Of a stretch of DNA of 64,000 nucleotides, positions 15,252 to 63,164 are shown piece after piece; within the stretch, counting starts at the first letter, position 1; each line of letters starts with the position of its first letter. This DNA comes from Schizochytrium sp. TIO01. Lineage: Eukaryota; Protista; Bigyra: Labyrinthulomycetes. A program made the translations under genes and the position numbers. The notes under the pieces were generated by a model, which worked only from the letters and a program-made list of their open reading frames with translations, was not told the origin of the DNA and did no database searches. The stretch is from positions 5,060,436 through 5,124,435 of the forward strand of contig SMSO01000031.1 of the NCBI GenBank assembly GCA_004764695.1. Reading direction: 5' to 3'.

Positions 15252-15347
15252 ACCTATATACTCTACACCCTACCCATCGTTTAGTTAATAGATTTTTTTT
15301 TGTATGCTATGCTATATATATATCATGAGATGTATTTCAAGCATCAT

Positions 15348-18885: not shown

Positions 18886-18962
18886 ACACTGCTTCACGAT
18901 TGAGCTATACAATTTTGTCTAAACCACTCACTTCCTTGTCAGGAAATTCGACAAAAAAATAT

Positions 18963-19043
18963 CGAGGCGAGCCGGACTCGAACCGACGCAGCTGACGCTA
19001 ATTGATTTCTAGTCAATCCCCTTAACCACTCGGGCATCGCCCC
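18963..19043 (-). tRNA. tRNA-Ser(AGA) copy 8
   Basis: Same 81-nt gene, GAGTGG variant. Confidence 0.97.
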
Positions 19044-19134
19044 ACGATGACATAATTGAGATACTTGGTCTACATATACAACTGTTACTTTCATTCAGAA
19101 TATTAAAACATAAAAAAGTCAAAAAAAAAAAAGT

Positions 19135-19215
19135 CGAGGCGAGCCGGACTCGAACCGACGCAGCTGACGCTAATTGATTTCTAGTCAATCCCCTTAACCG
19201 CTCGGGCATCGCCCC
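19135..19215 (-). tRNA. tRNA-Ser(AGA) copy 9
   Basis: Identical to copy 1. Confidence 0.97.
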
Positions 19216-19294
19216 ACAATGATTAGTCTTTGGCTGTAGATCATTTTGTATAATCTCTGCACAATATTCTGCAAAGGAGAAAACGAAAAAATAT

Positions 19295-19375
19295 CGAGGC
19301 GAGCCGGACTCGAACCGACGCAGCTGACGCTAATTGATTTCTAGTCAATCCCCTTAACCGCTCGGGCATCGCCCC
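19295..19375 (-). tRNA. tRNA-Ser(AGA) copy 10
   Basis: Identical to copy 1. Confidence 0.97.
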
Positions 19376-19464
19376 ACGATGAGTGAAAATGTAACACCTG
19401 GTCAATTTGTTTGACATGTTGCTCTGCTCCAGATTTAAAAAATAGAAGAACAAAAAAAGATTAC

Positions 19465-19545
19465 CGAGGCGAGCCGGACTCGAACCGACGCAGCTGACGC
19501 TAATTGATTTCTAGTCAATCCCCTTAACCGCTCGGGCATCGCCCC
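19465..19545 (-). tRNA. tRNA-Ser(AGA) copy 11
   Basis: Identical to copy 1. Confidence 0.97.
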
Positions 19546-20399
19546 AAAAGATGTACAGGACATCATCCTTGGTGGAGGTAGTCTCTTTGACAATAAAATA
19601 TATAAGATAAGAATTTATTTTAATGATTGCTTGAACGAATGTGTTAATCGAAGGTTTCTTGTTTTTATAAGCACTAGGAGGTACAATTGGTTTGCTAGTA
19701 GTATCCTAGAAGGTCTTTCACTTTGAACCTCAAGTGAAAACAAATAGAGAAGTTAGACCTAGTCTCAGAGCATGCATGCATCCTTATTTGTCGAAAACAA
19801 TGAGCAACAATATTACTGGTCATCAATTCAAGAACTACGAACGAAATTAAAACGTGCAAGATTGCAAGATGCAGTCCGAGCAATGACTTAAATGCTTCTT
19901 GATATTTGCAGCGAAGGGATATGGATTACTCCAACACTAGTCGTGTTTAGCTACATTAGGCTGAATGGAGACAAGATAGGAACATACTAGAAATGCAGTG
20001 CAACAAAGCAATATAATTTTGGAACGGCATTTCCGATTGAGCGGTACGCTCTGCTCCTCGCTTTTAGAATTCAATCTCAAATGAGATTTGAGCTGGGTAC
20101 AAATTGTAAACTTCGAATAAATCCAAGATTTTAGATTTTGGAAATTACATCTGAGAATTCCTGATACAACCATCTGCTTTAAGTCCCTCTTTACATTTAC
20201 AAGTCATATGACATCAATTTGGATTCGACTGAGTCGTACGAGTGACACGGTGGACAATGCATTACAGTGGACTCGAGATCTTCGAGATCCAGGTGTTTAC
20301 AATGATTTTGTTATAATCGCAGAGTTGTATTTGGTACTTTGTCAAAGACGGGAAATATTGTTTTGTTCCACACAAATCACTCAAGATAGACGAGGAACA

Positions 20400-23300
20400 A
20401 ACGTGCAAATACCTATTCGCTAGAACCGAGTATAGTGAAATCTGAATTGATGGTTGAGGGGGGGGGGACCAACCTAACATCTTCAATTATGCTTAGTACA
20501 GATTAAGTCCGTTTTAGTTTAGGAATTCTAACATGACCCAGTTTGCCTTGGATTTGGATTCCAAGGACAGCAGATCGCTAACTCGCAAAGCCAAAGTTTA
20601 TTGATTCTTCCTGAGTCTTCCCGAGGTTTCTTTAAGCCTTCATCAAGCCTCGTTTCTTCATCTTTAGAGTCAACCTCTAGCTGACCAAATTGAACGCAAA
20701 AATGTTGCGTACAAATGTCAAATATAAATTAAAGAGGATAGAAGTTTGAAGCCTTTCATGAACCAGGAGTGATCAAAGAGAAACATACAGTACAAGAACG
20801 AGCATGACAAACTGCCACTTTCAAAAGCCTGGTAGGATCAGTACAATCACACTTTAGGCAAGCACAAAACAAAACTAGCACAAAACTAGCACAAAACTAG
20901 CACGAACAACAATTCATGTACGAACATAACACATGTTTCTGATAACCAAATTTATAGAATTACGGCATACTACTCCTAAAAGAAAACACGAAACAGGGGC
21001 GTCATATCCAACTTATTAATACTGTAACAATAATGGGTGATACGAGCACCAGGTGTTTGTAAAATATATTTTACACTTAACCTCCTCTTTAAATTCAGAT
21101 GTAAAAGTGACAACCTTGCAGAATCATCAACAAGATTTTTTTGCAGATGGGGTCCAACCAAAGATATTATTACCTTCAACTTTTCAAACAGAAGTATTTG
21201 CTTAGATTACAGATTGAATGGTGGTGAAAACCAAATCAAAGCTCGAGGACCATTTGAGTCATCCTACTTCACAAATCATGTGAGGTACTAGGTCCTACTT
21301 ACAACTTTAAATATTGGTAAGTGGACGATTAACTAATATAGAAAACGAATGGCAAAGCTAGAGTTCGTCTAACTTCAATAAGGCTTTCAGTAAACTGCGA
21401 CAAAGCATAGTCAAAGCCTTCAGGCATGTTGCATCCGTCTTGTTGGTCAAACTCAAGCAGATTTGCATACGCATGTTGGCCTTGATAAGATAATAGAAAG
21501 GAAAATAAATGCATACAAAATCTGTTATTCAGCATTCAATATGGTGAGTTCTTATTTTCGAAATTTCAAATCGAAGGAACTTGAGGACAAAGTATTGCTA
21601 GAGTCCTTGGCGTCCCCACATAAGTCCTCAAAAACTTTGGACTTTAGGATTAGGACTAGACAATCAAATGCGTGGTTGTGAACTCAAAGTGGCCAAGAAC
21701 TGAATAGGTGGGTGGACATACCCATTGACCAAAGTTTATTACGGCAAAACCTGAGGTGATGGTCGAAAGACAAGCTAACGTATTGTCCACCGTTAGATAT
21801 GGTACAGATCAAGTTTGTCTTGTATTAGTCTCCTAGTAGGAACATGACTCAGTCTGTCCTGGAATTTATTTACAGAGACAGCAGATCGCTCACTCCTACA
21901 GCTAAAGCTTATCGAGCCTTCTTAAGTCTTCTTCAAGCCTCTTGCATTCCAATTCGTAGTTTGCGTTCCACTTCCTAGTCAACCTCTAGCTGATCGATCA
22001 AAATCATTCTTTACACTCGTGCAGCAACGACTGAAACACTTAAATCAGGATAAATAGAATGATAGCTGACTGACAGCCAATATTTCAAGATGGAGGCATG
22101 TACCAGGTTGTCGATACTACAGCATTCAAGCAGACACGCTGATAATCTAAAAAACAAAAAACGCCTTTTCGTTAAAAGCTACATTTTGTGCAACCTGATT
22201 GTACTAGAATGAAAAATCGAGAAGCGGCGCGGACTTAACGTGATCAGAGCCCTTGATAAATTAAATTACACCAAGGCGAATTCGCATATGCATAGAAATG
22301 TCTACATAGAGGCTTGTAATATCCGGAAGAGAAACTGGTGATCGGGTCAGCATGCTGGTCTATCTTCTAAACTCCAAGTCGTATCAAGCTAAAGGTTTAT
22401 CAAGGAAAATGAAGTCAAATGTATTTACTACTGACGAAAAGAGTTTTAAGTACAAAGAGTTGACGCATACGAAATAGCAAATTGATGACCTCAGAATTCA
22501 GTCCCATGGGTACATATGACCTTAACCATATACATGACCGAGTATTAACTTAGTTATCTCCTTTAGTATTCCAAAGCATTATATTCCAATCCTGACTACC
22601 CTGGCTTTGGCAATATGGACTCTAGCAGAACTTCTCGTGTGCATGTGTCAAACACACTGTCTTTTTTCTTGACTTGAATAAGAGTAATATCATGTGTATT
22701 CTCTTATGCGCGCGCGTCCAAGTGTCCTTGAGTTTTATTGAGGATTACACTCAAAGCTTTTGGCCAAAGATTCCAGCATGAATCTATACGAATGGTTCAC
22801 CAAAAGAGTATAACAGCAAGCTGACCTCGAATGACTTGTACTGTTCAACGAAAAGACCATGTTGTAGAGAGTGGCTAAAAAATCAAAACTTGTATACAAA
22901 GATGCTGAATAAATTATTTGGATAGCAGCAAGTCCAGAACAATGTTTTAGACAACAGCCTGTAATCACAAAAATCAACATTGATAAAACAAAAGTATCTA
23001 TAGATACTTTAGAGCTAGAAACATTGCCACTAGTAGTGGAGTTTACTGAGATATTTTTCAGCAGCAGCCGAACTAAAGGGTTGCAGGGGAAACAGCACAA
23101 AATTTGGTCGCGCGAGTATTAATGCTCGAGAGAATAACAGATTGCTAATCCATCATGGTTCAATGAAATTTTAAATGTCTAGATTCTGGTCTTGACCTGC
23201 AGAATAATTGAGAGAGTTATCATTTGATTTAGTAGGGTCATATTTTGTGGCCATACGATGCTTCTCTACATCAAGCATGTTGAATCTGAAGTTCAGCACC

Positions 23301-25940
23301 GATGTCGAACAAACCCGTAATCATACCTGTACATCTTATACAGCATTGCCTACATATATCTCTACACATGTCATAGTTACATGTTACGTGCACGTCAATT
23401 TACAACACTCTACCAATGACTCTGATTTACTATCCTGCAGATCGAATAAACCGAATTATCATAAGCGTTGTAGAATACGTAGTAGGTCGATCAGTTTTTG
23501 TGTATCTTTGTATATCAAAACAAATAAATCATCAGTGCCCTCTTCAAAGGAGTAAGCTGTTTCGAATGAAAGGATTTGAAGAGAGCCAAAATACTGTTTG
23601 GGCAGACAAACACCAGCTCAAAGTAAGCAGCTTTATTGAGACGCTTAGCAGGATTCCCCAAGTAAACGACAAGTTTGGTCTTATGCGAAAACATTACATT
23701 GAATTGAATAGAGTACTCTAGACTTTTCATGGGTGGTGCTAGTTGTCGTTCTGAATTTGTGGTTTCTCATGACTTTACAATTCTAGCAACAAAACGGAAC
23801 AATGCAGTTAAATACTCTATCAATACGTTTTAGGCTTAAAGTGAGACTTTTCAGCTTTCCAAGCACAAAGTTGATATTAGAAAAGTGAAGTGAAGGTTTA
23901 CATATCGAGTGACAGTGTTATGAATTCGAACATGTGATCATTATAAGTTAATGAGCTGCTTTTAGCTTAAATATTGCTGAAAGGTATTTCTGATTAGCGT
24001 GAGGTTGACTGTAAAGATGAAGGCAAGAAGCTTGATGAAGGTTATAAGAAGGTTGATTTAAGTGTTAGCGAACTGCTGTCCTGGGTAATGAATTCTAGGA
24101 CAGATGGATTCATGTAGTAATTAGGGAGATTAAGACATTCTTGAGATAATCGATGGGGCTAGGTTATCTAACTTCTCCAACCATCGATTCAAGCTAAACC
24201 AAGCTTGGGTATCGGTAATGTGTATTCACATTTATAGTTCTTGGCTTCAGCAGCCACATGAGTCTGGCTGCCTATTCTTGTTCTAATGTAAACTATTTCT
24301 ACTGGGTTTTACAAAGGGACACCAAGAACTCTAGCGATGTCTTGTCCACTAGTTCCTTCGATTGGAGATCTCAGCAAATATATAATTTTGGAGGGAGAAC
24401 ATTTCCGATCGGTATGCAGTAAGTAGACCTGATCGTACTACGTCCCCAAAGGTTAAATTTTATACAAATCTTCGTCCAACAATCCTGGTGCTCGCTAGTT
24501 GTAATTTTTCAATGTTTATGCATGTGCCTTGATACCTTTGCTGAGAGACGAATATAGTCAGCCAGAGGTTGACCATGCCGATGAAGACAAGCAGCTTGAG
24601 GAAGGCTTGTTAAGCTCTAGCTTTAAGGGTTAGAGGTATGCTATCTTTGGAGATGAATTGTAAAGCAGACTTACACACAACAGTGTTTCTCCAGTTGCAG
24701 ATCTTAGCAATCATCTAGCTTTGAAAGTCAGCATTGAGATTGCGAATGTATTCTCTATTACATTATTTCTCTACATTGAATCGATAAACTATTTGCACAC
24801 TTCAGCAGTAAAGGAGTTTATGGGGTGGTGTTGTGCCAACAGGCGTTTTGGTGAACGGGGCTGGTGTCATAAGCTTAAAAACTAGAAACGAGCATGGCTA
24901 AATTGATCTGCAGAGAATTCACTTTCAGAGCTATTCGAAGAGGTAATTTTTTGTCTTAAACAAAACACAATTTGTGACTAGAAAATATAGAAATGCAAAG
25001 GCCCAATACTCAGGTATGTGCGTTCGAGGTTCATATTGAGGCTGGATTCATGTCAATGACTTTCGCTTTAATTTGGTCTGGTGGATCCATTATCCAAACA
25101 TGCTCATTCACCAAGTAAATTGGAATTCATATGATGTACTACTACCATCTTGTGACTACAGCCCATAAACTGAAGGCAACCAACTGCAGTCTATAAACCT
25201 CTAAGTATGCTAAAGAGCTGACGTGAATCATAACAAAGTTCTTTCTTTATTTGTGTAGCTACGTCAAACACTTTGATTCACCCGCGCAATGGTGTTGTTT
25301 TTGGTCATATCAGAATTCTGGATGAAGCGTCATCCGGAGCGTTTGAAGTTAAAGTTAAAAATTACGTCGTACCTCTCTGCCCAGAGTTTCTTGTAAAAAT
25401 TCACACTTGAATAGCTGTGCATTGACTGGGTAACCAACAGTAGAGGCGACATTTCTAATAAGTGCTGGAAATTCAGATGTATGTCCAACCTGAATCAATG
25501 ATTGAGTTTCGAATGTCTTCTGTGAAGTGGGCTCAAGAGGTAGGTTGATAGGTTACTAGGTGCATTCCGAGACCTCCAATCAAACAAGCTCATGGGGAAG
25601 GTGCTGCTGGTATACTTTCCAAACCATTGAAAGCTCCAAATAGAATGATTATTGCATAGGAATTAAAGTTACATCTAGATCTATAGCTGTGAACCTAAGA
25701 ACCCCAAGAACCCCAAGAACCCTAAGAACAACCATGATAAACAGATATATTTCCATTATAGAAGGAAGCAGTGAGCTCTACATCTTAATGGAGAGGTGAA
25801 TTCACCTGAAGTTTTCTGTTATGTGTGACACAAATGAGGTCTGTCTTATTCCTAAGATTACACATTAGAAATCCACTCCGCTTCTAAATTGCTAATTGTT
25901 AAGACGTAAACCTTTCTAGTCAACCTCCAGCCAACCAGAT
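20400..25940. pseudogene. Four to five decayed copies of one unknown coding sequence, in both orientations
   Basis: Homologous segments at ~20400-20686(-), ~21710-21995(-), ~24001-24240(+), ~24559-24680(+) and ~25915-25936(-). They translate to variants of QLEVD.KDE...LDEG...L.VSDLLSL..NS..DWVM with stops and frameshifts. Confidence 0.65.
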
Positions 25941-26677
25941 TCGTCATCCAGCAGTATCGACCACCATGGTCAGCATTGATGTTTTCGTTCTATAGCCTAG
26001 GGTTCTGGGGGTTGCAGGTAGGTTACGAAAGGCTTACAGATCTTTGATCTTTCGCTTCGAAATCCCAATTTAAAAAAGCTTTGTATCAAAATTAAACATA
26101 AAGGAAGCGATGTAAGGCGAACTTCACTGTTATACTATAACGCAGAGTTCGGAGACTTGGTTGAAACGACCAACTAAATAAACAAATTTATTCATTCAAG
26201 GATACTCAATGTATACCCCAGATGGTTATTTCGCTACACTCAGCAAAGAAGAAGGAATACAACAAAGCGTTATTCGGTCGCAATACCAGAATGCGATTTA
26301 TTTTCAGCGACGACGAGTCGTCACGAACAACAAAATTTTTGGATTAAGATAAACTTTCTCTTAGTCCTCTTCCACTCTTAAATTTAGTTATTGCAGCCTA
26401 TTTATTAGCAACCGCGATATTAGCAACCGCAAAGCTCTATTATTACTTAAACAAGAAAAGAAAAAAGGAGATGACATAAAGTTCTTTATGTATATCATGT
26501 TTCACAACTCAAACAAAAGATTTTAAAACTTCATACTTGAGGATAAGATAGATCTTTCGAAGATTATAGAAGGATGATAAATGTAGCCATTTGAAAAAAC
26601 AACAAACAAATTAATAATAGAAAAAGAAACGAATTCTGGTGTCCACAAAGCATGAACACAAGAGAAAAAAAAAAAAC

Positions 26678-26758
26678 CGAGGCGAGCCGGACTCGAACCG
26701 ACGCAGCTGACGCTAATTGATTTCTAGTCAATCCCCTTAACCGCTCGGGCATCGCCCC
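26678..26758 (-). tRNA. tRNA-Ser(AGA) copy 12
   Basis: Identical to copy 1. Confidence 0.97.
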
Positions 26759-26838
26759 ACGATAATTCACTCTTGAGCCTGCAACAATTTATTCTCTCCA
26801 TACCAATGTTAGTAGAAAATGAGAAAAATAAAAAATAT

Positions 26839-26919
26839 CGAGGCGAGCCGGACTCGAACCGACGCAGCTGACGCTAATTGATTTCTAGTCAATCCCCTTA
26901 ACCGCTCGGGCATCGCCCC
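26839..26919 (-). tRNA. tRNA-Ser(AGA) copy 13
   Basis: Identical to copy 1. Confidence 0.97.
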
Positions 26920-27206
26920 AGAGATGGCTAGTTGCCATTTCCTTGAAGGTATGTGGGTTACTGGTACAATATAAATACAAACAGTACTGATTTTTCCCGC
27001 CAAACCTGCAAAACCGCCCAACCTCCACTTTTTGTGTACTTCTATGATCAGTAGAGAAAAATCAAAAGGATTACATAGTATTACCTACTACCTACTACAA
27101 ATGATCTCCAGTATCTCCATCAAAAAAGACATTTTGACGCTTGGCTGCACTCACTGCGTCTGCGATTCTTGAGGCAGACATTGATTGGGAACGTGAGGTC
27201 GCCACC

Positions 27207-53600: not shown

Positions 53601-54629
53601 GGCAGGCAGCCATAAATAGCTGCGCGGAGACTGACATCTTGGGCTGAAGAGGCTCGCTGTAAGGCGATCAAATTACAGGCGTCAGGCAATTGGACAGACA
53701 GCGACGAGGAGCTTGAGGAGATGAGCAGCAGCGGCGATGGCGGCAGAGGCAGGAGAAGACCGAGGTGGCCAGGAAGCGGTGGCGAGGCTGATTCGTTCGT
53801 TACTGCGTGGCGAGCAAGTGAAGTGGAGGTTAGTTACATTGAACAAGAAGGTTTTGTTCCCCAGGCAGCCAGACAGCCAGCCCCTCGTGGTAGACATGCA
53901 TGCTATACAGCGCCCAGATCAGTGAGCAGCCCGTTTCACATCCCCTGGCGCAAAGCTGGTTTCGCAGCGAAAGTCTAAAGCCTAAGCGCCGTTTCTTTGA
54001 TGTATCGATGGGTTTCTTCGGTTGATCGTCCATAATTGTGTCCACGATTTGCAAGATGGCGCCCTCTTTCTGAAATGGGAATAATGAGCGAAGGAGACTA
54101 AAGTTTCCAGAGGTTGGACGTCTCCAAAAGCAAGAGAAGAGCAGAACTGGGTGGGGCTGATGATCTTTGCGAGAACCTTGAGCAAAAGGAGGCATTGGGA
54201 AGGCTGGAACTGTAAACGAACGAGCGATCCTCCGGAAAGAAGAAGAGACTTGTCTTTGGTACTGTATTTGTATTCTCATTCTCGTTCTCACAGCAGAAGT
54301 TTTACAGAGAGACTTTAAACAAAAGCTCTCCTTCTTGGAAGGATGTTTTATTGCACTTTTGATAAAAGAATGAACTGCTAATGGTAAACTGTAGGAGCGA
54401 TTAGCATTTGCTCTTTCCATTTCCAATTATTGCTTTCTACTTTATTTTATTTTTCGATGAATGTTTTTTTAAAGTGATTTGCTTATTTTCAGACCACTAC
54501 AAAAAGCAATAAAAGAATTGCTTCTACTTGAGAGAGTCAGAGAAAAGACACAGAATTGGCCATCATCAGCAGACAGGAATCGAAGAGCGCCATTGCTGCA
54601 GCCGTCGCGAATTGCGCGAAGGCGTTGCA

Positions 54630-57600
54630 ATGGGCGACATCGACGAGCTGGAGGGAATGCCAAGCCCACCCAGAGGACACCCGCCGCCACCTCCTGCGTT
54701 TGAGCCTACCGAGGAGGCCTCCGAGGAGTTGTCCAAGTTCGCGATGGCCTTGGAGGGCGCTGGGCAAAGTGTCGAAAAGACCTTCTTGCTGGACAGCCAC
54801 GACGACGCCCACGATAGTGACCTGCAAGGTGATGGTGAAGACTGCGTAGAAAATGCGATGAATGGAGCTGAAGATAGAGATATTGAAACGGAAGCTTTGG
54901 ACGACGCAAAAGCTGGCTTAGAAGAAATATTGGCAACCACGCCAAAACAAGAGAGCGTGCATACGGAAGAGAAAACACGAGTCCCGCAAGCCTCGTCACC
55001 GAGTAGTACATCAAAAAGATCAAGTATGATGGGAAATGTTAAGACATCAAGTACAGAGAATGTAGAAGATGCACATGCCCGGAATAGCAGTCATTCAACC
55101 TCAACAAATGTACGAGTGTGCTGCAGGTTTAGGCCGGCCAATCGGGTGGAGACAACCCAAGGAGCTGACCGGTGCGTCTCGTTTGGCCAGGATAAGGCCT
55201 CAGTAAAGCTTGAGGAAAACAACTTCACATTTGATCGTGTGTTTCAAGAAGACTCCTGTCAAGAAGACGTTTACAACTATTGCGCTAAGCCGCTCGTTCA
55301 AGACGTGCTGGATGGCTATAACTGCACAATTTTTGCGTACGGCCAAACAGGATCGGGAAAAACTCATACTATGATGGGACCTGAAGGCGGCAAAGCTTCG
55401 GCACATGGTATAGAGGACTTGCGAGGCGTGGTGCCACGCATTGCGGAGGATATTTTTCACAGCATGACCAACGCTGAAATGGGTACTGAGTTTATCATTA
55501 AAGTAAGCTTCGTAGAGATTTACATGGAGAGAATCCGTGACCTATTGAACCCTAGCGCGCGCAATCAAAATCTTCGTGTCCGTGATGTACGTGGGCGCGG
55601 AGTCGTGATTGAAGGTGCGGAAGAAGTATATGTTTCATCAACAAAAGAGTTGCTTAAAGTGGCAGCAAAAGGAAACGCAAGCCGTGCAATAGCTTCAACT
55701 CGTATGAATCAAGACTCTAGCCGTAGCCATTCTGTATTTATGATTACAGTTGCACAGCGGCAAACACAATCCACGCAACTTAGTAGGACGGGCAAACTTT
55801 TCTTAGTCGATCTTGCTGGTAGTGAGATGGTAAAGAAAACTGGGGCTACTAGCGGTGTGCTGGAGGAGGCCAAAACGATCAATCGATCTTTAAGTGCGCT
55901 AGGCAACGTGATCAAAGCTCTTGTGGAAGGCGCTAAACACGTTCCCTACCGTGATAGCAAGCTTACGCGATGTTTGCAAGACTCTCTCGGCGGGAATTCT
56001 AAAACATCACTTATTATTACCTGTTCTGGGTTTTCATATAACTCCACCGAAACTCTCTCAACACTCCGCTTTGGCACCAGGGCTAAGCGTATCAAGAACA
56101 AGCCGAAGGTCAATAGAGAATTCTCGGTAGCTGAGTACAAGACTATGGTCGAGCAAACAAAGGATGCATTGCGACTCGTCGTCGAATATGCGCGTTCCTT
56201 GGAAGCTAATCTGGGCATAGAGGTTAAACAATCCCCAGTACAGCAAACCAAAGATAAGGCGAGTTTCACTGTAACTCCACGGGACGGGAATCAGGATTCT
56301 CATCATCTAATTCCAAGTAATGACGATATGGAGTTGGAAAACCATGATGATGAAGAGGATGAGGAGACCACGAACACGAAGCCATCTAAGCCACCGAGGC
56401 ACTCCCAAGAGAGCCTCGACCGTCAGCAAGCGTCGTGCCCCGAAAACGCAAGATATCCTCCACAACGACTTTCTCAGTCATCGTCGATTGTCCCGTTAGC
56501 AGGATCACCTGATCAACCATTACATGCACAGTCTGCTAGTGAGGAAAACTCTGTGCTGGCACGTGCTGAAGAGGCTCTTACCCGAGCTCTAGCAAATGTC
56601 GATTTGTTACGTGCCAAGCTTGAAGAGGCGCAAACGGAAGCAGAAATCACTAAGGATGCACTGGAGGGCGCGAGGACACGTAATCAAGAACTTGAGGACG
56701 ACCTAGGCAAGTCCTCCAAAGCACAATCTGATCTGGTACAACGTGTTGCTAAACTAGAGCTTTACAAGCAACAAGCTGAATTTAGAGAGAAGGAAATGCA
56801 GCTCACAATGCGCGGGCTTGAAGATGAAAACAAACTTTTGAAGCAACATCTTGGTAGTACAAATGGCGAGATCTTCTATAGTAGCTTTGGCCCACAATCT
56901 ACACAAAAGAAAAAGAAGAAACGCGTTACTGATTCTAATGGACCTGATGTTGGTGCCAAAGCCGACCCGGAAGAGTCAAAAACTCAACAGGAGGATGATA
57001 GTGAGGAAGCTTCCCAGGAAGCACTTCTCAAGAGCGATCTCGTCCATATTACTGAAAAGTACATTCAACTTAGATTGGAGCATCTTGAAGCACAGGAACT
57101 TATTGCTGCACATGAAAATAGGGACCTCAGCGAGATTAATGATATCTTAAAATCTGAGCGCGAGCACAACCGACAATTGAACGCACGCATCCGTACCATG
57201 GAGGCCAAAATTGAACTTCTGAACCATAACGAAGTTCTGTGGAAGCTGAAGTTGGAGAATAGAGAGGAGCAGATCAACTTTCTCGAAGCTGCGTTGCATG
57301 ATTACCAGGGAACTTTCAAGTCTCATGTAGAAGTCTACCAAGCACAAGTAAACAAGCTTTCGGCAGAGCTTACATCGTATCGTTTGGCATTCGACAGATT
57401 GGAAAGTGAGGAGGAAACAACTTGCTCCGAAGCTGTCAATTCGGAAGAATTTATGATGCTTAAGAATAACCAGCAGATTCCTAGAGTTATTAAGCCTGTG
57501 CGTGGAGGTGGAGCTTCAAAACCTCCGTTACCTAAACCTACTCAAAACTACACAGGCAATTCGTTCCATAGTTTTAAGTCTCCATCTGCACGAAAACGGT

Positions 57601-57779
57601 TCAACAGTACCCCGCTGTCAAAGACTCAACGGAGCAACTCCCATGATAGCGACGACCAGCAGCCTTCACCAGCCAAGTGGCTCATGGACTCCATAGACAG
57701 ACTTGCTCCTCCACCAAGATCAGTCAATTCAAGACCACCTTCCAATGAATCGCTCCCGGGCTACACAGCATCAATCTAA
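54630..57779 (+). CDS. Kinesin-1 (conventional kinesin heavy chain)-like motor with acidic N-terminal extension
   Basis: Motifs VRVCCRFRP, GQTGSGKT, SSRSH, DLAGSE, HVPYRDSKLTR; coiled-coil stalk; IAK-type tail VIKPVRGGG. Confidence 0.92.
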   Translation: MGDIDELEGMPSPPRGHPPPPPAFEPTEEASEELSKFAMALEGAGQSVEKTFLLDSHDDAHDSDLQGDGEDCVENAMNGAEDRDIETEALDDAKAGLEEILATTPKQESVHTEEKTRVPQASSPSSTSKRSSMMGNVKTSSTENVEDAHARNSSHSTSTNVRVCCRFRPANRVETTQGADRCVSFGQDKASVKLEENNFTFDRVFQEDSCQEDVYNYCAKPLVQDVLDGYNCTIFAYGQTGSGKTHTMMGPEGGKASAHGIEDLRGVVPRIAEDIFHSMTNAEMGTEFIIKVSFVEIYMERIRDLLNPSARNQNLRVRDVRGRGVVIEGAEEVYVSSTKELLKVAAKGNASRAIASTRMNQDSSRSHSVFMITVAQRQTQSTQLSRTGKLFLVDLAGSEMVKKTGATSGVLEEAKTINRSLSALGNVIKALVEGAKHVPYRDSKLTRCLQDSLGGNSKTSLIITCSGFSYNSTETLSTLRFGTRAKRIKNKPKVNREFSVAEYKTMVEQTKDALRLVVEYARSLEANLGIEVKQSPVQQTKDKASFTVTPRDGNQDSHHLIPSNDDMELENHDDEEDEETTNTKPSKPPRHSQESLDRQQASCPENARYPPQRLSQSSSIVPLAGSPDQPLHAQSASEENSVLARAEEALTRALANVDLLRAKLEEAQTEAEITKDALEGARTRNQELEDDLGKSSKAQSDLVQRVAKLELYKQQAEFREKEMQLTMRGLEDENKLLKQHLGSTNGEIFYSSFGPQSTQKKKKKRVTDSNGPDVGAKADPEESKTQQEDDSEEASQEALLKSDLVHITEKYIQLRLEHLEAQELIAAHENRDLSEINDILKSEREHNRQLNARIRTMEAKIELLNHNEVLWKLKLENREEQINFLEAALHDYQGTFKSHVEVYQAQVNKLSAELTSYRLAFDRLESEEETTCSEAVNSEEFMMLKNNQQIPRVIKPVRGGGASKPPLPKPTQNYTGNSFHSFKSPSARKRFNSTPLSKTQRSNSHDSDDQQPSPAKWLMDSIDRLAPPPRSVNSRPPSNESLPGYTASI

Positions 57780-58023
57780 CAAAAATGCTGTTTACTCAGG
57801 CACTGGCATCTCACAGAGCAACTTAACACAGCTCACTAATCCAAAGCACCACCAAAACAACTGTAACCAAGCAAACTAACCATTAACAATTACAAAAACA
57901 CATCAACTTGTATATTGCAAACTTCGAAACTAACATTAAAAAAAAGAAAAAAAATTAAATTAAAAAAAGAAAAATTAAACCTTGGGATTCTGTTCATCGG
58001 AGAAACACCAAAAGTGAAACAAA

Positions 58024-58115
58024 TTGAATCAGGTGCCAATTAACGTTTGACGTGAAATCACTACGCAGTTCATAAGCAGAGCTGGCGAAATCAAACGGAG
58101 TATCATCATCTTCAA
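58024..58115 (-). ncRNA. Box C/D snoRNA, U38/snR61-like (copy A)
   Basis: TTGAA-g-ATGATGA...CTGA-TTCAA; D' guide GCCAGCTCTGCTT-ATGA pairs with LSU AAGCAGAACUGGC (1 mismatch); +5 nucleotide is the A equivalent to yeast Am1133. Confidence 0.9.
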
Positions 58116-58176
58116 AGTATTTCATTCTCAAGAGTTCATTTAAAAAAAAAAGAAAAAAAGGCACAGGCCAAATACA

Positions 58177-58272
58177 GCATCAGGGATATACAGCAAGCAC
58201 AGTACGTTCACTGACCGCGCAAGGCAGCCTCAAACAAGAGGTGTCAGAAAATTGCTGAGTCTCATCACTTGC
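58177..58272 (-). ncRNA. Box C/D snoRNA, snR48-like
   Basis: GCA-a-GTGATGA...CTGA-TGC; guide TTTTCTGACACCTCTTG is complementary to LSU CAAGAGGUGUCAGAAAA. Confidence 0.85.
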
Positions 58273-58418
58273 AAAATAGTTCAAAACCTCAAACAAACAG
58301 AATGTAGTTCGAATGAAACTTTGTAAACAAACCCCACTCACCCCACCCCAACCACACGAAGATCAATGCACGAACAATAAGATGCAATGCACGACTCCCT
58401 CGTGAGGAACAAAATCAA

Positions 58419-58506
58419 GAATCAGGTGCCAATTAACGTTTGACGTGAAATCACTACGCAGTTCATAAGCAGAGCTGGCGAAATCAAACGGAGTATCATC
58501 ATCTTC
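58419..58506 (-). ncRNA. Box C/D snoRNA, U38/snR61-like (copy B)
   Basis: 89-nt identical duplicate of 58026-58114. Confidence 0.9.
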
Positions 58507-58542
58507 ATCGATTTCTTCTCAATACCCCAACCAATCCGATTT

Positions 58543-58733
58543 GAATGTAACGCTGGAGTTAGTGAACCGCAACCATCTAACCGGCTACGATACGTGGAAA
58601 CAGCGCTTACAGTTTGTCTGCTGCTGCCAAACTACCGAAGTAATCTGACGTTTTATCTATGGCGAATGAAAATTGACCTGGAGAACTTAATTTCAATGAA
58701 GGGAACTCCAAGGCATCAGGTAAAAAATCGCCA
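58543..58733 (-). ncRNA. Candidate H/ACA snoRNA
   Basis: 5' hairpin closed by TGGCGA/TCGCCA; H box AGATAA (58658-58653); 3' hairpin (GCGCTG/CAGCGT); ACA 3 nt from the proposed end. Confidence 0.55.
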
Positions 58734-59267
58734 AGACACAACCCCCTAACCTATAAACCAAAAAAACAACAAAAAGAAAATTTGAATGTCGGCGTTACGG
58801 TTAAGCTCCATCCTCATAGCCACATAGTGACGAAAATAAGTGAAGCTTGTGGATAAACGCGGCAGTGCAAACTCTTGCCCTACTGCTAGATCCTGCATAG
58901 GAATCCCGGAAGGAACTCAACTACACAGGCTCAATAACAACAAAGCAAGCGCACCTGGACAATTAGTCTTGGACCTTTGTCAACACATGTACCTCACGAA
59001 AAAGTAGGCGTGCTTATCGACGTGGCAACCGCTTTCCCCGTGTTGGAGGGCGCCAGAAGCCTTGGTCCGAAAAGCGCTTGTACAGCGCAAATGGTCTTAG
59101 CCCGAAGCTAAGTTTTAAGATGGGCACAAACATCAGTTCCGTAGGAGCCCTATAAAGCCCTCCTGAATTCGCATAGTTCGTTTCACATCGCGTCAATAAC
59201 AGCAATTGGAATTTGAACAGTCACCGGGCAAACACCAACCAACACTACCGTGCCAATTATTACAAAA

Positions 59268-59347
59268 TAGGTCTGAAATATGCATGTTCTCACTCACGGG
59301 TCATCGGATCCGAAAGATGGTTGATTAGCAATTTGTCTTCATTCCTA
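59268..59347 (-). ncRNA. Box C/D snoRNA, snR39B-like
   Basis: TAGG-a-ATGAAGA...CAGA-CCTA; guide ACCATCTTTCGG upstream of CCGA pairs with LSU CCGAAAGAUGGU; +5 is the G equivalent to yeast Gm805. Confidence 0.8.
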
Positions 59348-59409
59348 GATAATAAACTCTCGGAGCACCTCTCCACACAATCACATGACTACCTAGTACA
59401 TAAATAACT

Positions 59410-59505
59410 CGGATCAGTCCATCTAGTAGGTATACTATAGAAACCACACGGTGTTTGAGCACAGACTAATATGCGTTCAGAGTAGCTGGTAAGACATCAC
59501 ATCCG
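59410..59505 (-). ncRNA. Double-guide box C/D snoRNA targeting LSU CCAUCUAGUAGCUGGU
   Basis: CGGA-t-GTGATGT...CTGA...CTGA-TCCG; guides pair with CCAUCUAGUAG (D) and AGUAGCUGGU (D'). Confidence 0.85.
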
Positions 59506-59590
59506 TACTCGACATCAGCGTTAACCGTTCAACACTGAACTCTCCTCACTAATCCGATCCACACCCCAACCATAACATAAAATAATCTCG

Positions 59591-59679
59591 CTCCTCAGAC
59601 TTAAAAAGCTCGGTTTGAATAATTCTTCAAATGGCAGAGCCATAATAAGTGTTGAATTTCAGTTCTCGCATCATAGGAG
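59591..59679 (-). ncRNA. Box C/D snoRNA, U36a/snR47-like
   Basis: CTCC-t-ATGATGC...CTGA-GGAG; D guide pairs with SSU UUAAAAAGCUCG; +5 is the A equivalent to yeast Am619. Confidence 0.85.
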
Positions 59680-59777
59680 TACGAGCTCTTCACCACACTT
59701 TTCCGAAACAGATTTGAGACTAAATCTTAAATCTTAAACACCATTCACAAAAACACCTTCACCCCCTTCACATGGCT

Positions 59778-59889
59778 GCGGTCAGTGTAACTATGACTAT
59801 AATAGGTGCCTCAAAGCCTATGGTTTGCAATAACTGCCTACCAAAGCGGGCTCGGCGATTATGCTCAAAGAGCGTTGTCTTCCTCCCGC
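59778..59889 (-). ncRNA. Box C/D snoRNA, snR63/U46-like
   Basis: GCGG-g-AGGAAGA...CTGA-CCGC; D guide pairs with LSU GUAACUAUGACU; +5 is the A equivalent to yeast Am2256. Confidence 0.8.
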
Positions 59890-60117
59890 GACATAGCCAT
59901 CCGAAGACGAGAGGCTACACCCTACCTATGATTTCTCGGTTGAAATGTACGGGTGCAAAGCGATCAACAAAGACCAAAAAGCTCAGCCGACCGACTCTAA
60001 AGGGCACTTCCATGATTGTAGCGCTGTAAAACTAAAATACAGACCGGAATACTTTACTCCGGAATGCACTATCTCAACGCAAACCTATGTATTAAATAAA
60101 CCAGAGCACATAAATTG

Positions 60118-60217
60118 TAGCATCAGAGAGATTCCCATTTCCGTCTTCTCGGCATAGCTCAAGCCCGATCATGTCGAACCGGCTCACGATGTCCCTATTT
60201 GGAGTACTCTTCATCTA
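60118..60217 (-). ncRNA. Double-guide box C/D snoRNA targeting LSU GAGAUUCCCACUGUCCCUAU
   Basis: Box C ATGAAGA, box D CTGA; guides pair with GAGAUUCCCA and UGUCCCUAU. Confidence 0.8.
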
Positions 60218-60302
60218 TAAGAATTCAAAGTTTCACGAGGAAAGTTAGTCTACTGAACGGAATCAATTAAAACGCAAAAACGAGAGGCTAACTTAAAAAC
60301 GC

Positions 60303-60417
60303 GTTGAATCGGATCCGGCAATCGTATATGAGCTGAGAACGATATTTCTCTTCAACGGACAAAGTCCTCGAAGCGAGCTGGGTTATAAGTAAAACTTATC
60401 GTCATCTCCGTTCCAAC
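60303..60417 (-). ncRNA. Candidate box C/D snoRNA targeting LSU GAGCUGGGUU
   Basis: Box C ATGACGA, box D CCGA, imperfect terminal stem, 10-nt antisense element. Confidence 0.55.
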
Positions 60418-60603
60418 ACATTCTAAGCAGAGCACGATCTCGAGATGAACCAAAAAGTAGACGTACCTGCAATTTTTTTTAAAATGTCAAAGACATTATA
60501 ACAGCTTCACCGGTCACAGCAGCGAGAAAAACTTATCGCGCAGAATATTCAGGTGAAGCAACAGAACACTATAAAACACCCACCCACAACTACAACTTGG
60601 CGA

Positions 60604-60681
60604 AGCGATCAGCCAGTGTGAATACTTTTCGCAGCACGTATATGCTCAGAATAGTTCAGGTTTGTTGAGCATCTTGTCGCT
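60604..60681 (-). ncRNA. Box C/D snoRNA, snR51/U41-like
   Basis: AGCGA-c-AAGATGC...CTGA-TCGCT; D guide pairs with LSU CAGUGUGAAUAC; +5 is the U equivalent to yeast Um2729. Confidence 0.8.
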
Positions 60682-60760
60682 CGCTCATACGTTTTCAGCA
60701 GCAGCATCTATGAATGCGCTCTTATACCCCTTCACCCCTCGTAATACCCATAGATGACAC

Positions 60761-60838
60761 AGCGATCAGCAACAATTGTATTTGACCTCACATGAATATT
60801 AGTGAATGTAGATAAGTTTGTTTGGGCATCCTCTCGCT
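60761..60838 (-). ncRNA. Box C/D snoRNA, snR62/U34-like
   Basis: AGCGA-g-AGGATGC...CTGA-TCGCT; internal guide pairs with LSU AAUGUAGAUAAG; short D guide against SSU AACAAUUG. Confidence 0.75.
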
Positions 60839-61062
60839 TGGACATCGTCATACAGAACGACACCCCAGGAAGCAAGCGGCCAAGTGCTAGCAAAATACTA
60901 CCAGATGCCATGTGACCCCGAACTGCTGTTACAACAACTATCAAGTCGTGGCTGTTTGGATTAAGTAAATCAGTGTCAGTCAACAAATCTCCTATCTTGA
61001 AACAGAGAACAGACGTTTAAACAGTCGAGCCAACATCATAAAAGCATACAGTAAAAGCAGAA

Positions 61063-61168
61063 GGGCTCAGCATATGGGTGGTGATCACAAAGGATCTGGT
61101 GGTCATAGCCAAAAAGTGGGCTGGTGGACCCGAGCTACCCGTCTGATTAATTTTGGAAATCATCGCCC
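61063..61168 (-). ncRNA. Box C/D snoRNA targeting SSU UAUGGGUGGUG
   Basis: GGGC/GCCC terminal stem, box D CTGA, degenerate box C (ATGATTT), 11-nt D guide. Confidence 0.65.
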
Positions 61169-61219
61169 AAGCTTTTAGTTCAGCAATTATAACTGCTTGA
61201 TGGATCTCGGCATTGGTCA

Positions 61220-61307
61220 TGGGTCAGAAAATAGCGGAATCTATCCTCATTTTGAGGCCTTCGTATGAGCCCCATCGGTAGGGGAATCCTAGGTATCCTC
61301 ACTCCCA
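61220..61307 (-). ncRNA. Box C/D snoRNA candidate (possible LSU AGGGGAAUCC guide)
   Basis: TGGG-a-GTGAGGA...CCGA...CTGA-CCCA. Confidence 0.65.
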
Positions 61308-61496
61308 GAGATTTCGACAACACAAAACGTCTGCAAAGTTCTAGAGGTAACTTACACATAGGAGAGTCCGCAAGACAATTCGAACCACCCAGCATTTATC
61401 ACTGAATAGTACAAATTGTTCAATCAAAACACTGTACGAAATAGGAGGAGCGCACAAATACTAGTAAAAGCAGAGACGCGACCACCACTTCCTTAT

Positions 61497-61595
61497 AGCC
61501 GTCATTGAAACCACAGCATAGTTTATCCACATGATTTTATGAGGAGCGACCCTCTTTCGGCCGGGTAAACGGTATATGTGTTGTAATCATAGGCT
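61497..61595 (-). ncRNA. Double-guide box C/D snoRNA (LSU GAAACCACAGC and CGGGUAAACGG)
   Basis: AGCC-t-ATGATTA...CCGA...ATGA-c-GGCT; two 11-nt rRNA-antisense elements each abutting a D or D' box. Confidence 0.82.
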
Positions 61596-61793
61596 TAGGA
61601 GTAAGAAGGGGGTCTGCTAAATCATACTTGTTGACCAGTAGTCGAGACACAATTTCTCATACAGCAGGAAAACAACCAGGGACCAGGAAGGCAAAATTGG
61701 TGCTTCATAAATGGATGTGCAAATAATGACTGTGACAAAATAAATCCCGATGTTAGTTGGTCTTGTCCAAGAATACATACATTAAAAATGAAA

Positions 61794-61875
61794 ACCAATC
61801 AGAGATGTCGCCATTGTAGGAAATATACATATGGCTCAGTTGGTGGTGCATGTAAGTGTATCGTCACAGCGTGGT
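61794..61875 (-). ncRNA. Box C/D snoRNA, U33/snR55-like
   Basis: Box C GTGACGA, D' CTGA, D CTGA, ACCA/TGGT ends; D' guide pairs with SSU UGGUGGUGCAUG; +5 is the U equivalent to yeast Um1269. Confidence 0.82.
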
Positions 61876-62024
61876 GTCCTAAACATGGACGCCATCGGTT
61901 CGAATTATCAACCCGTGGTTTGGGCCTTCCTCATCGCCAATCCGAAATACTACTTGAGCGACATCTGCCAGAGGATTTTTTACATTCTTGGGAATCGTCG
62001 GATTACTCGTAACTAAGACTTACC

Positions 62025-63164
62025 TCAATTCTTTACAAAGTATTCTTCAAAAGTTCTGCGTAAAACAAAGCCACTCGAACTCGTATTGGGGAGTGATAGC
62101 TTGTTCCGCACCTTTTGCCAGAGATGATTTGCGACCACGTAGTCAAAGCCACCGATCGCCTTTACAGCATCATACAATTTGGTCGGGTGAATAAGTTCAC
62201 CCTTCAGACCTGTGAGCTTACTAATGAAGCGTTCACGCTGGCCGGCGAAACGCACAGCACGACCAGTTAACATGGATGAATCAAGATACTCTTGTGGGGA
62301 CATCGCATTTGCATCTCCAGAGTCCATGATGATCTTGTCTCCTTCTTTAAGCTTGGGAAGACTGTTAGATACAACTCGACCTGACGCATCAACCCTGACC
62401 GAAGCCAATTCTGAGGCGTCAACGTCTACATCCACTGTATAAGGGTAATTGCCGACTTTATCCGCAAAAGCAACTGAGTATCGCAGTTGGGAATTGTTGT
62501 TTACATTTGATCGGCGTTTCTTGCGCTTCTTACCCTTTCCACCAGAGGATTTTACCGGAACATCGTCGTCAAGATCGTCGTCGAGATCCACTGACTCGTC
62601 TCCTTCAAAGGAGGCATCATCATCAGGACCATCTCCATTTACCACCATGCGTTTTTTCGTCTGGCGGCCGGATCTGGTTGTATATTCTTCCTCTAGTGCT
62701 TCCATGGCACCTGCCAAGAGATCTGCTTCTGCGACCTCTTGCGTCAGGTTTGCATCCCGCACTGTCCTTGCACCTCTTTTGGTTCTTCTTTGACCTTTAC
62801 CTCCAGAGCTTGCGCTCTTTGAGGCAGTCACGCCAGCGTTAGGGTTTCCATTAGCGGTAGAGCTAGCGTTGGCCGAGGCGGATGCAGCCAGGCTGGCGTT
62901 GGCTGATCCTGATGCACGGCGTCCGCGCGCGGCCTGTGCCTGGTCGGCGGAGGAGGGCGGAAGCGCGTAAACGGGGAGACAGTACGAGTTCACGAACTCA
63001 GAGAGGTTGAGCTCGCGTGCTTGGACAGCATGGTAGGGCAAATAGTCGTCCTGGATGCTGCCGGCCAGAGCCATGGTAAACTCGCGATCTCGCGCAGCCG
63101 CCCCGGACGCAGCGCCTGCGTCGAGGGCGGCGCTGACGGTGGAGAAGACCGTGAGCGCGGTCAT
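62025..63164 (-). CDS. ARID/BRIGHT DNA-binding domain protein; probable snoRNA host gene
   Basis: C-terminal KLYDAVKAIGGFDYVVANHLWQKVRNKLSLP...SSGFVLRRTFEEYF; NLS KGKKRKKRR; first ATG at 63164. Confidence 0.85.
   Translation of the reverse strand: MTALTVFSTVSAALDAGAASGAAARDREFTMALAGSIQDDYLPYHAVQARELNLSEFVNSYCLPVYALPPSSADQAQAARGRRASGSANASLAASASANASSTANGNPNAGVTASKSASSGGKGQRRTKRGARTVRDANLTQEVAEADLLAGAMEALEEEYTTRSGRQTKKRMVVNGDGPDDDASFEGDESVDLDDDLDDDVPVKSSGGKGKKRKKRRSNVNNNSQLRYSVAFADKVGNYPYTVDVDVDASELASVRVDASGRVVSNSLPKLKEGDKIIMDSGDANAMSPQEYLDSSMLTGRAVRFAGQRERFISKLTGLKGELIHPTKLYDAVKAIGGFDYVVANHLWQKVRNKLSLPNTSSSGFVLRRTFEEYFVKN

Follow-up and report, generated by a model that had tools for sequence, protein, structure and literature searches.

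What does a gap of about 4 kb encode when it contains no protein-coding gene? The question is raised by a region near the end of the 64,000-nt stretch of Schizochytrium sp. TIO01 DNA analysed here (contig SMSO01000031.1; hereafter the window). A plus-strand kinesin open reading frame (ORF; 54528-57779, Pfam Kinesin 9e-113) borders the gap on one side and a minus-strand gene for an ARID-domain protein on the other. A first-pass annotation had proposed that its minus strand carries about 15 small nucleolar RNAs (snoRNAs) of the box C/D class, with additional H/ACA candidates. We find 16 C/D units. Judged from sequence and its comparison, the minus strand from about 61940 to 58026 is almost certainly a C/D snoRNA cluster. 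We also consider the overall reading, of 16 C/D snoRNAs with two interspersed H/ACA-like RNAs, to be highly probable; hosting in the 3' untranslated region (UTR) of the ARID gene, with release by splicing, is a probable arrangement that we put forward with more reserve.

Sixteen C/D units on one strand

The snoRNA cluster spans window positions 61940-58026 on the minus strand. The gap is ORF-free, as first described: the mechanical ORFs of 58024-61875 are all 85 aa or shorter, and none has a Pfam match. The strand that would be transcribed is U-rich, with a plus-strand AT skew of +0.06 to +0.35. The 16 units, 78-112 nt long, show the layout anticipated for units of about 78-115 nt, namely terminal stem, box C, box D', box D and terminal stem. 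In every unit the C box retains its GA core, and the D box reads NUGA or CNGA. A strict consensus scan (at most one mismatch and a 4-bp stem) finds only five of them because many boxes are degenerate: the C boxes include AUGAUUA, AGGAAGA and xGAUGC, and the D or D' boxes include CCGA, CAGA, CGGA, AUGA and UUGA. The final set comes from guide-anchored scans together with comparison with a relative, the environmental contig L011 described below. Terminal stems of 3-7 bp close 15 of the 16 units. In sequence terms, the degenerate boxes are consistent with kink-turn geometry, comprising a stem, a 3-nt bulge and the retained GA.

Formation of a kink-turn, assembly with fibrillarin and methylation at D+5 are the established mechanism of the C/D family. 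In each RNA of the cluster, the terminal stem and the C and D boxes would accordingly be expected to form a kink-turn, and the RNA would join the fibrillarin methyltransferase complex. A guide of 10-15 nt would then pair with ribosomal RNA (rRNA), and the nucleotide opposite the fifth guide position upstream of D or D' would receive a 2'-O-methyl group. The units are listed below, with target positions in the small-subunit (SSU) and large-subunit (LSU) rRNA of the genome itself.

61832..61940, minus strand: U1; stem UUGGC/GCCA, C AUGAGGA (61934), D' CCGA (61898), C' GUGACGA, D CUGA (61839); 12-nt D guide to SSU 1229-1240, D+5 U1232
61497..61595, minus strand: U3; C AUGAUUA, D' CCGA (CAGA in L011), C' AUGUGGA, D AUGA; guides to LSU 2220-2230 (D+5 G2223) and LSU 2338-2348 (D+5 A2341)
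61220..61307, minus strand: U4; stem UGGG/CCCA, C GUGAGGA, D' CCGA, D CUGA; D' guide to LSU 2104-2113, D+5 G2107 (G2106 in the register of L011)
61063..61168, minus strand: U5 (Z43-like); stem GGGC/GCCC, C AUGAUUU, D CUGA; D guide to SSU 1223-1235, D+5 U1225
60761..60838, minus strand: U7; stem AGCGA/UCGCU, C (GAG)GAUGC, D' CUAA (CUGA in L011), D CUGA; 13-nt D' guide to LSU 1894-1906, D+5 U1897
60604..60681, minus strand: U8, 78 nt; stem AGCGA/UCGCU as in U7, C (CAA)GAUGC; D' guide to LSU 3005-3017 (G3009), D guide to LSU 2721-2732 (U2724)
60306..60413, minus strand: U9; C AUGACGA, D' UCGA (UUGA in L011), a short hairpin, C' UGAAGA, D CGGA (CUGA in L011); D' guide (12 bp, one G-U) to LSU 2938-2949, D+5 A2941
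60117..60221, minus strand: U10 (snoR44/J54 family); C AUGAAGA, D' GUGA, D CUGA; guide to LSU 2317-2327, D+5 U2319, or C2320 if a degenerate D' one nt over is used; other guide to LSU 2306-2315 (A2309)
59778..59889, minus strand: U11; stem GCGG/CCGC, C AGGAAGA (AUGACGA in L011), D CUGA; 12-nt D guide to LSU 2236-2247, D+5 A2239
59591..59679, minus strand: U12 (SNORD36-like); stem CUCC/GGAG, C AUGAUGC, D CUGA; 12-nt D guide to SSU 593-604, D+5 A595
59410..59505, minus strand: U13, a double guide; stem CGGA/UCCG, C GUGAUGU, D' CUGA, D CUGA; guides to LSU 922-931 (G926) and LSU 916-926 (U919)
59268..59347, minus strand: U14; stem UAGG/CCUA, C AUGAAGA, D' CCGA, D CAGA (CUGA in L011); 12-nt D' guide to LSU 791-802, D+5 G793
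59128..59228 (borders approximate), minus strand: U15; C GUGACUG (poor), D' UUGA, D CUGA; 13-nt exact D' guide to LSU 1491-1503, D+5 A1494, a score reached by 0.27% of background boxes
58419..58507, minus strand: U16 (snR61/Z1/Z11 family); C AUGAUGA, D' AUGA, D CUGA; 15-nt exact D' guide to LSU 1117-1131, D+5 A1121
58177..58272, minus strand: U17 (snoR1 family); C GUGAUGA, D' UUGA, D CUGA; 15-nt exact D' guide to LSU 2785-2799, D+5 G2786
58026..58114, minus strand: U18; stem UUGAA/UUCAA; duplicates U16 in tandem, with no difference in Rfam score, alignment or guide

In U3, U6 of the C box together with A1 of the D box keeps the pair between the two boxes as U-A instead of G-C. Two assignments replaced others. 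U1 was initially read with a C box at 61868 and a D box at 61803; alignment with L011 identifies GUGACGA as the C' box and places the unit at 61940-61832. For U7, an AUGACGA at 60853 was dropped as the C box in favour of the stem AGCGA with GAUGC.

The guides pair with the genome's own rRNA

Complementarity was scored against rRNA from the genome's own rDNA, located by sequence search (SSU 1785 nt, LSU 3365 nt). Twenty-one box-adjacent guides pair with it perfectly or near-perfectly over 10-15 bp, and guides of at least 10 nt end 0-2 nt upstream of box D or D' (3 nt in U17). The expectation that the guides would match the organism's own rRNA is thus borne out, at levels above both genomic background and shuffled sequence. 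Exact antisense words of at least 12 nt number 11 on the minus strand of the region and 6 on the remaining 60 kb of that strand. In 300 dinucleotide-preserving shuffles of the region itself, such words average 0.95 ± 0.98, and words of at least 11 nt, of which the region has 20, average 3.65 ± 1.87; neither observed count was reached in any of the 300. Duplexes anchored on boxes tell the same story. Among CUGA boxes, 6 of 27 in the region score at least 11, compared with 10 of 429 in the rest of the window; among other NUGA boxes, 5 of 91 score at least 13, compared with 5 of 1820.

Twelve target motifs had been quoted when the cluster was first proposed. Ten occur exactly in the own SSU or LSU rRNA and have their minus-strand antisense inside 58024-61875; the other two were mis-transcribed. 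The corrected form of the first is AAGCAGAGCUGGC; it contains a G of the own LSU at a position that is A in most eukaryotes, and it is this G that the guide matches. The second, the 16-mer CCAUCUAGUAGCUGGU, is the union of two overlapping guides in one double-guide unit.

Together, the guides predict 19 distinct 2'-O-methylation positions. Three are in SSU rRNA (A595, U1225 and U1232) and 16 in LSU rRNA: G793, U919, G926, A1121 (guided twice), A1494, U1897, G2107 and G2223 in the first half of the list, and A2239, A2309, U2319, A2341, U2724, G2786, A2941 and G3009 in the second. Several of these presumably correspond to yeast sites, judged by local offset. We take LSU A1121 and G793 (offset 12) to be yeast A1133 (snR61) and G805 (snR39b), LSU A2239 to be A2256 (snR63), and LSU U2724 and A2941 (offset 5) to be U2729 (snR51) and A2946 (snR71). 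In SSU rRNA, A595 is likewise assumed to be yeast A619 (snR47) and U1232 to be U1269 (snR55).

The plus strand of 57975-61925 also holds more words antisense to rRNA than its shuffles, with 11 of at least 11 nt against 4.2 ± 2.0 (reached by 1 of 300). This excess means rRNA-sense words on the snoRNA strand, several of them within U4, U5, U7, U9 and U14. One of the plus-strand antisense words, of 12 nt at 58629-58640, directly precedes a CUGA of that strand; we considered a C/D RNA there, at 58629-58648, and rejected it, as no credible C box or stem accompanies it.

The rDNA units themselves are dispersed in the genome, with 12 full-length SSU matches over 11 contigs, several near contig ends. 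Subtelomeric rDNAs are reportedly found in Aurantiochytrium, and the dispersal seen here fits that account.

A collinear cluster in a relative

A metagenome scan with the double-guide pattern of U13 returned 14 contigs. Environmental contig L011 (14.9 kb, 42% GC), from a distant relative, carries a collinear, one-strand cluster in which 10 identical guide words occur in identical order, and a homologue of the ARID gene lies directly upstream (37% identity over 155 aa). Eight blocks can be aligned between the window and L011, at 63-82% identity; within them, boxes and guides are kept and the rest of the block varies, and the spacers between units are unalignable. This is the pattern that had been forecast for related genomes. 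U3 is 77% identical to L011 6531-6434, U9 is 79% identical to its counterpart over 117 nt, and the U1 orthologue keeps both stem and guide. No counterpart of U5, U12 or U15 was recognised in L011.

Terminal stems change in sequence and remain paired. The U9 stem is GAACGGA/UCCGAUUC in the window and UGAAAAUGA/UCAUUUCA in L011, that of U11 is GCGG/CCGC in the window and GUGG/CCAC in L011, and that of U14 is UAGG/CCUA in the window and AGGG/CCCU in L011. In the U13 family, represented by 15 sequences including 14 environmental homologues, compensatory changes occur at each of the four terminal-stem pairs, with 93% of cells paired; none of 500 shuffles reaches the covariation score of 0.566 (0.244 ± 0.063 in shuffles). 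The alignments also justify the box assignments, since a box that is degenerate in one genome stands opposite a canonical box of the other: CUGA is the partner of D' CUAA, D CGGA and D CAGA, and AUGACGA that of C AGGAAGA.

The guides of the two clusters differ at positions of lineage-specific substitution in the own LSU. The guide of the snR61-type unit U16 reads ...CCAGCUCUGCUU in the window and ...CCAGUUCUGCUU in L011; it places a C opposite G1124 of the own LSU, and the L011 guide has U at that position. G1124 (AAGCAGAGCUGGCGA) is present in 3 of 3 rDNA copies examined and the AAGCAGAACUGGCG form in 0 of 3. Likewise, the D' guide of U10, AAAUAGGGACA, matches the own LSU ...CCCUAUUU in 3 of 3 rDNA copies, and L011 has AGAUAGGGACA. 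Guides that follow substitutions in their own rRNA would not be produced by chance similarity or by dead genes.

We note that positions 1124 and 2325-2327 of the own LSU are substitutions in otherwise highly conserved stretches (AAGCAGAGCUGG, CCCUAUUU), and that cluster guides match them.

A single L011 unit combines the D' guide of U7 (LSU U1897) with the D guide of U8 (LSU U2724), which points to a U7/U8 duplication in the lineage of the window. The arrangement suggests, as read from the sequences, that each copy kept one ancestral guide after the duplication and that U8 gained the guide to LSU G3009.

Two further metagenome contigs, L015 and L018 (55-56% GC, unidentified eukaryotes), carry a U13-type double-guide unit in different same-strand clusters. 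Each has seven box-adjacent rRNA guides, and neither has an ARID gene on the contig.

Covariance-model matches

At a permissive Rfam threshold, the region yields eight matches. Six are to C/D families, and all six fall on the minus strand, as predicted, although none reaches its gathering threshold. The window copies score 21-28 bits against gathering thresholds of 30-49 (RF00357, RF00345, RF00476, RF00049, RF00330). Their alignments are full-length and agree mainly through boxes and guides, the remaining sequence being unrelated. The best of these is U12 with SNORD36 (RF00049; 27.8 bits, E 0.24, threshold of 30 unmet), a full-length alignment with an identical D guide. U16 and U18 match snR61/Z1/Z11 (RF00476) as two identical copies at 22.4 bits, and U5 matches snoZ43 (RF00330) at 21.2 bits, below threshold.

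The L011 cluster scores higher in places. It yields 15 weak matches, 14 of them to C/D families on the cluster strand, including SNORD33/Z195 for the U1 orthologue and snoR69Y for the U9 orthologue. U17 scores 25.9 bits with snoR1 (RF00345) and its L011 orthologue 39.6 bits. U10 scores 22.6 bits with snoR44_J54 (RF00357), below the gathering threshold of 48, and its L011 orthologue scores 54.3 bits, above it; we therefore treat U10 as a divergent member of RF00357 by orthology. The Rfam names also appear to fit three of the presumed yeast sites: the snR61 unit with A1133, the SNORD36-like unit with A619 and the SNORD33-like orthologue with U1269.

Pairing with the own rRNA under controls, the weak Rfam matches and the collinear relative agree with the original suggestion of a large C/D locus overlooked by ORF-based annotation. 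Rfam at curated thresholds finds none of the units, so that guide searches against the own rRNA and synteny were needed to recover them.

H/ACA-like elements

H/ACA candidates had been proposed for the same strand. As a class, they do not stand out. A pocket search for closing stems and bipartite complementarity flanking a uridine of the rRNA, with an H or ACA box located 13-16 nt downstream, gives 14 matches on the minus strand of the region, and about 28-32 per 4150 nt are expected from the rest of the window. Because this search shows no enrichment, the general H/ACA claim is unsupported. Two individual elements conserved with L011 are nevertheless H/ACA-like, and to that extent the suggestion holds.

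59943..60080, minus strand: HA1, H/ACA-like; two hairpins, of which the 3' one contains an internal loop; ACA lies 13 nt below its upper stem
58784..59013 (ends approximate), minus strand: HA2, H/ACA-like; 63% identity with L011 over 230 nt

HA1 has ACA here and AUA in L011, and no clean H box. Its block 60022-59940 aligns to L011 5613-5532, and five predicted pairs, four of them in the 3' hairpin, are changed on both sides with pairing kept. HA2 has an ANANNA motif (AGACUA here, AUACUA in L011) and a terminal ACA-UUC in both genomes; by inspection, the stems of its 3' hairpin differ in sequence and keep their pairing, within a complex consensus fold. ACAUUC is not enriched as a recurrent 3'-end motif. 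No canonical conserved target in the own rRNA was found for the pockets of HA1 or HA2. We rejected the identification of HA2 as U17/snR30, prompted by a resemblance to the m1/m2 elements, since its loop strands lack conservation between the two genomes and share no SSU partner.

The ARID gene as putative host

How are the snoRNAs produced? The sequence immediately upstream of the cluster suggests an answer.

62025..63164, minus strand: ARID-domain coding sequence, 379 aa, single exon, beginning with M39 of the mechanical ORF and closed by the stop codon TGA (62027-62025); Pfam ARID 1e-06
62018..62023, minus strand: GTAAGT, a consensus 5' splice site, 1 nt after the ARID stop (TGA, G, GTAAGT)
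61730..61757, minus strand: candidate 3' end of the first intron, after U1; branch-site-like ACUAAC, U-rich tract, CAG
61622..61627, minus strand: donor-like GUAUGA, located 27 nt upstream of U3; in L011, GTAAGT closely precedes the U3 orthologue
61350..61355, minus strand: donor-like GTAAGT, located about 42 nt upstream of U4; in L011, GTAAGT closely precedes the U4 orthologue

The ARID protein is 56% identical to a protein of Hondaea fermentalgiana and identical in 377 of 379 residues to a transcriptome-derived peptide, MMETSP0959 (ORGANISM "Aurantio..."). Since that peptide ends at the same residue, the ARID gene is expressed and ends at this stop. In the NCBI taxonomy, the TAXON_ID=87120 printed in the MMETSP0959 header belongs to a fungus, Rhizopogon burlinghamii, and contradicts the ORGANISM string; we take this to be a header error. 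On the ORGANISM string and the Hondaea homologue, we assign the genome to a thraustochytrid, Aurantiochytrium.

At the homologous place, L011 reads TAG-C-GTAAGT, although the flanking non-coding DNA is unalignable. The occurrence of the stop-adjacent GTAAGT in both genomes suggests that the cluster is probably released from introns of the ARID 3' UTR. In L011, three GTAAGT lie within about 400 nt, where about 0.13 would be expected from the contig-wide frequency, and the cluster terminates in ACUAAC, a U-tract and UAUAG. U1 begins about 80 nt after the ARID stop in the window and about 28 nt after it in L011; the distance in L011 leaves no room for a promoter and indicates that U1, at least, is co-transcribed with ARID.

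We propose that the cluster would have no promoter of its own and would be transcribed as the long 3' part of the upstream ARID gene. Splicing would free the snoRNAs from introns that carry a single snoRNA each at the 5' end of the cluster; further down, several would share an intron or precursor. The cluster had been called polycistronic. This description appears not to apply to the first units, which seem to lie in separate introns of the ARID 3' UTR given the conserved splice signals; it may remain apt for the downstream units, whose tight packing in L011 points to precursors or introns with several snoRNAs.

Alternative origins and how they fare

A number of observations weigh against the reading advanced here. 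With regard to the units themselves, several boxes are strongly degenerate, and U15 combines a poor C box with the lack of a clear terminal stem. For about half of the second guides (D or D'), no rRNA target is convincing; C/D snoRNAs commonly have a second guide without an rRNA partner. At Rfam gathering thresholds, the window gives 13 tRNAs elsewhere and no match in the cluster region. The synteny comparison draws on one relative, L011. One further candidate is at background level, has no L011 orthologue and is kept outside the 16:

60976..61041, minus strand: U6, weak candidate; C AUGAUGU, D CUGA, no terminal stem; guide to LSU 1855-1866, 12 bp including two G-U, score 10

With regard to hosting, downstream units in L011 lie 12-25 nt apart (U9-U10, U11-U13-U14), which makes one intron each impossible; several snoRNAs would therefore have an intron or precursor in common. 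Within the window, the enrichment of splice-like motifs is only about twofold, and the 3' half of the cluster shows no clean exon-intron pattern in either genome.

The tight packing and sparse motifs are what would be expected if the same snoRNA genes formed an independent polycistronic unit, with a promoter downstream of ARID and a precursor that is cut by endonucleases, trimmed by exonucleases and never spliced. Plant and yeast polycistronic snoRNA clusters are processed in this way, by endonuclease cutting and exonuclease trimming. The L011 spacing leaves no room for exons, the 3' two thirds of the window cluster contain few splice-like motifs, and weak ones, and other environmental contigs have same-strand multi-snoRNA clusters that lack an ARID gene. 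The 5' end of the cluster argues the other way. The roughly 28 nt between the ARID stop and U1 in L011 are too short for a promoter, the stop-adjacent GTAAGT is kept in both genomes amid unalignable non-coding DNA, and further GTAAGT motifs stand directly before the L011 orthologues of U3 and U4, at a density far above the contig-wide expectation (three in 400 nt against about 0.13). We regard an independent unit as the strongest of the alternatives, and as unlikely.

A separate non-coding, multi-exon host gene of the GAS5/UHG type that merely abuts ARID is another candidate, in line with the short stretches between the putative introns, which are not conserved and contain no ORF. Such a gene would have to start in the interval between the stop and U1, 80 nt in the window and 28 nt in L011, and the first donor precedes any such start site; we consider it improbable.

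That the units are non-functional, whether through chance complementarity, decay into snoRNA pseudogenes or derivation from rDNA fragments, is very improbable: no window unit reaches an Rfam threshold, many boxes are degenerate and U18 is a plain duplicate of U16, but box adjacency and the shuffle and background controls speak against chance, guides and boxes are conserved where spacers are not and at a distance at which ARID is only 37% identical, stems change in a compensatory manner, guides track lineage-specific rRNA substitutions, and the matches are scattered over the rRNA and antisense to it, unlike rDNA fragments.

Comparison with known snoRNA clusters

Plant snoRNA clusters, as in Arabidopsis and rice, include both independent polycistronic and intronic forms. 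The locus described here resembles them in its many C/D units and occasional H/ACA elements arranged head to tail on one strand with short U-rich spacers, and the best Rfam matches of the window and L011 are to plant-defined families (snoR1, snoR44/J54, Z43, snoR69Y, Z1/Z11). It differs in belonging to a heterotrophic stramenopile, in starting right after the stop of a protein gene with a splice donor, and in having donor motifs before individual units, as in genes with one snoRNA per intron.

The animal host genes GAS5 and UHG/SNHG1 carry one snoRNA per intron and are often targets of nonsense-mediated decay. As in those genes, a donor motif lies a few to tens of nt upstream of a snoRNA and the 'exons' are short and not conserved. 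Unlike them, the putative host codes for a protein, the conserved ARID protein, and has every snoRNA downstream of the stop; several units are too close for one intron each, and splicing is deduced from motifs. The stop would be far upstream of the last, putative exon junction, which makes the ARID mRNA a candidate for nonsense-mediated decay.

Yeast polycistronic units such as snR72-snR78 and snR190-U14 are processed by RNase III. Here, too, several C/D snoRNAs would derive from one precursor. In contrast to the yeast units, the locus is larger (16 units), its linkage to a protein gene is conserved, and no RNase III-type stem-loops were identified between units.

C/D snoRNAs in clusters, snoRNA host genes and the sites targeted here are familiar biology; the proposed conserved hosting in a 3' UTR would be modestly unusual.

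Other features of the cluster and window

58283..58414, minus strand: conserved element separating U16 from U17; forms a hairpin and is no textbook H/ACA RNA

This 132-nt element has an 88% identical copy 425 kb away on the same contig (L008, G000:C30:5546938-5547070), with diverged flanks. Its hairpin shows one compensatory pair, and it may be a non-coding RNA, a small repeat or an exon of the host gene. A second copy concerns U13: 43 nt at L009 (G000:C31:4502469-4502511) are 91% identical to its 5' flank, stem, C box and guide start, and are followed directly by GTAAGT. L009 may be a truncated snoRNA copy at the exon-intron border of another gene.

Inside the cluster, about 280 nt of the minus strand (58508-58785) have no recognisable unit, no L011 alignment beyond chance and no paralogue; the stretch terminates in ...GCGUUACAUUC. 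Fold-energy z-scores of the inter-unit segments are mostly unremarkable, with exceptions at 60116-59889 (z -2.1) and 59122-58790 (z -2.4).

Elsewhere in the window, 13 tRNA-Ser(AGA) genes of 81-84 nt are arrayed at 15347-26920, 12 of them on the minus strand and many 160-270 nt apart. Finally, at about 590-690 on the plus strand, 11 nt exactly antisense to LSU 720-730 stop 1 nt short of a CUGA (box at 686), and AUGACCA occurs about 95 nt upstream; a further C/D snoRNA may lie here.

Implications for labyrinthulomycetes

The lineage had been thought to be little catalogued for snoRNAs, and the literature searched bears this out: full-text searches returned no paper treating snoRNAs in Aurantiochytrium or thraustochytrids, the sole co-mention being a diatom genome note. 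The units described here are apparently the first concrete snoRNA set, and their 19 sites the first predicted rRNA methylation map, for a labyrinthulomycete, a group used industrially for production of docosahexaenoic acid (DHA) and of ecological importance. The locus also offers a case of guide-target co-evolution, in which a guide C stands opposite the lineage-specific LSU G1124, and one of unit duplication with division of guides, in which U7 and U8 together hold both guides of one L011 unit.

If the ARID gene is the host, splicing that releases snoRNAs would leave exon junctions downstream of the stop, and the transcript would likely be a substrate for nonsense-mediated decay. We tentatively suggest, as a more speculative extension, that ARID may be a dual-purpose gene conserved across thraustochytrids, whose coding exon stops 1-2 nt short of a splice donor, whose multi-intron 3' UTR produces about 18 snoRNAs and in which nonsense-mediated decay could couple the level of ARID, a chromatin or DNA-binding protein, to snoRNA and ribosome output. 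Hosting by ARID, if true, would make this locus a clean and unusual example of a conserved snoRNA cluster in the 3' UTR of a protein-coding gene.

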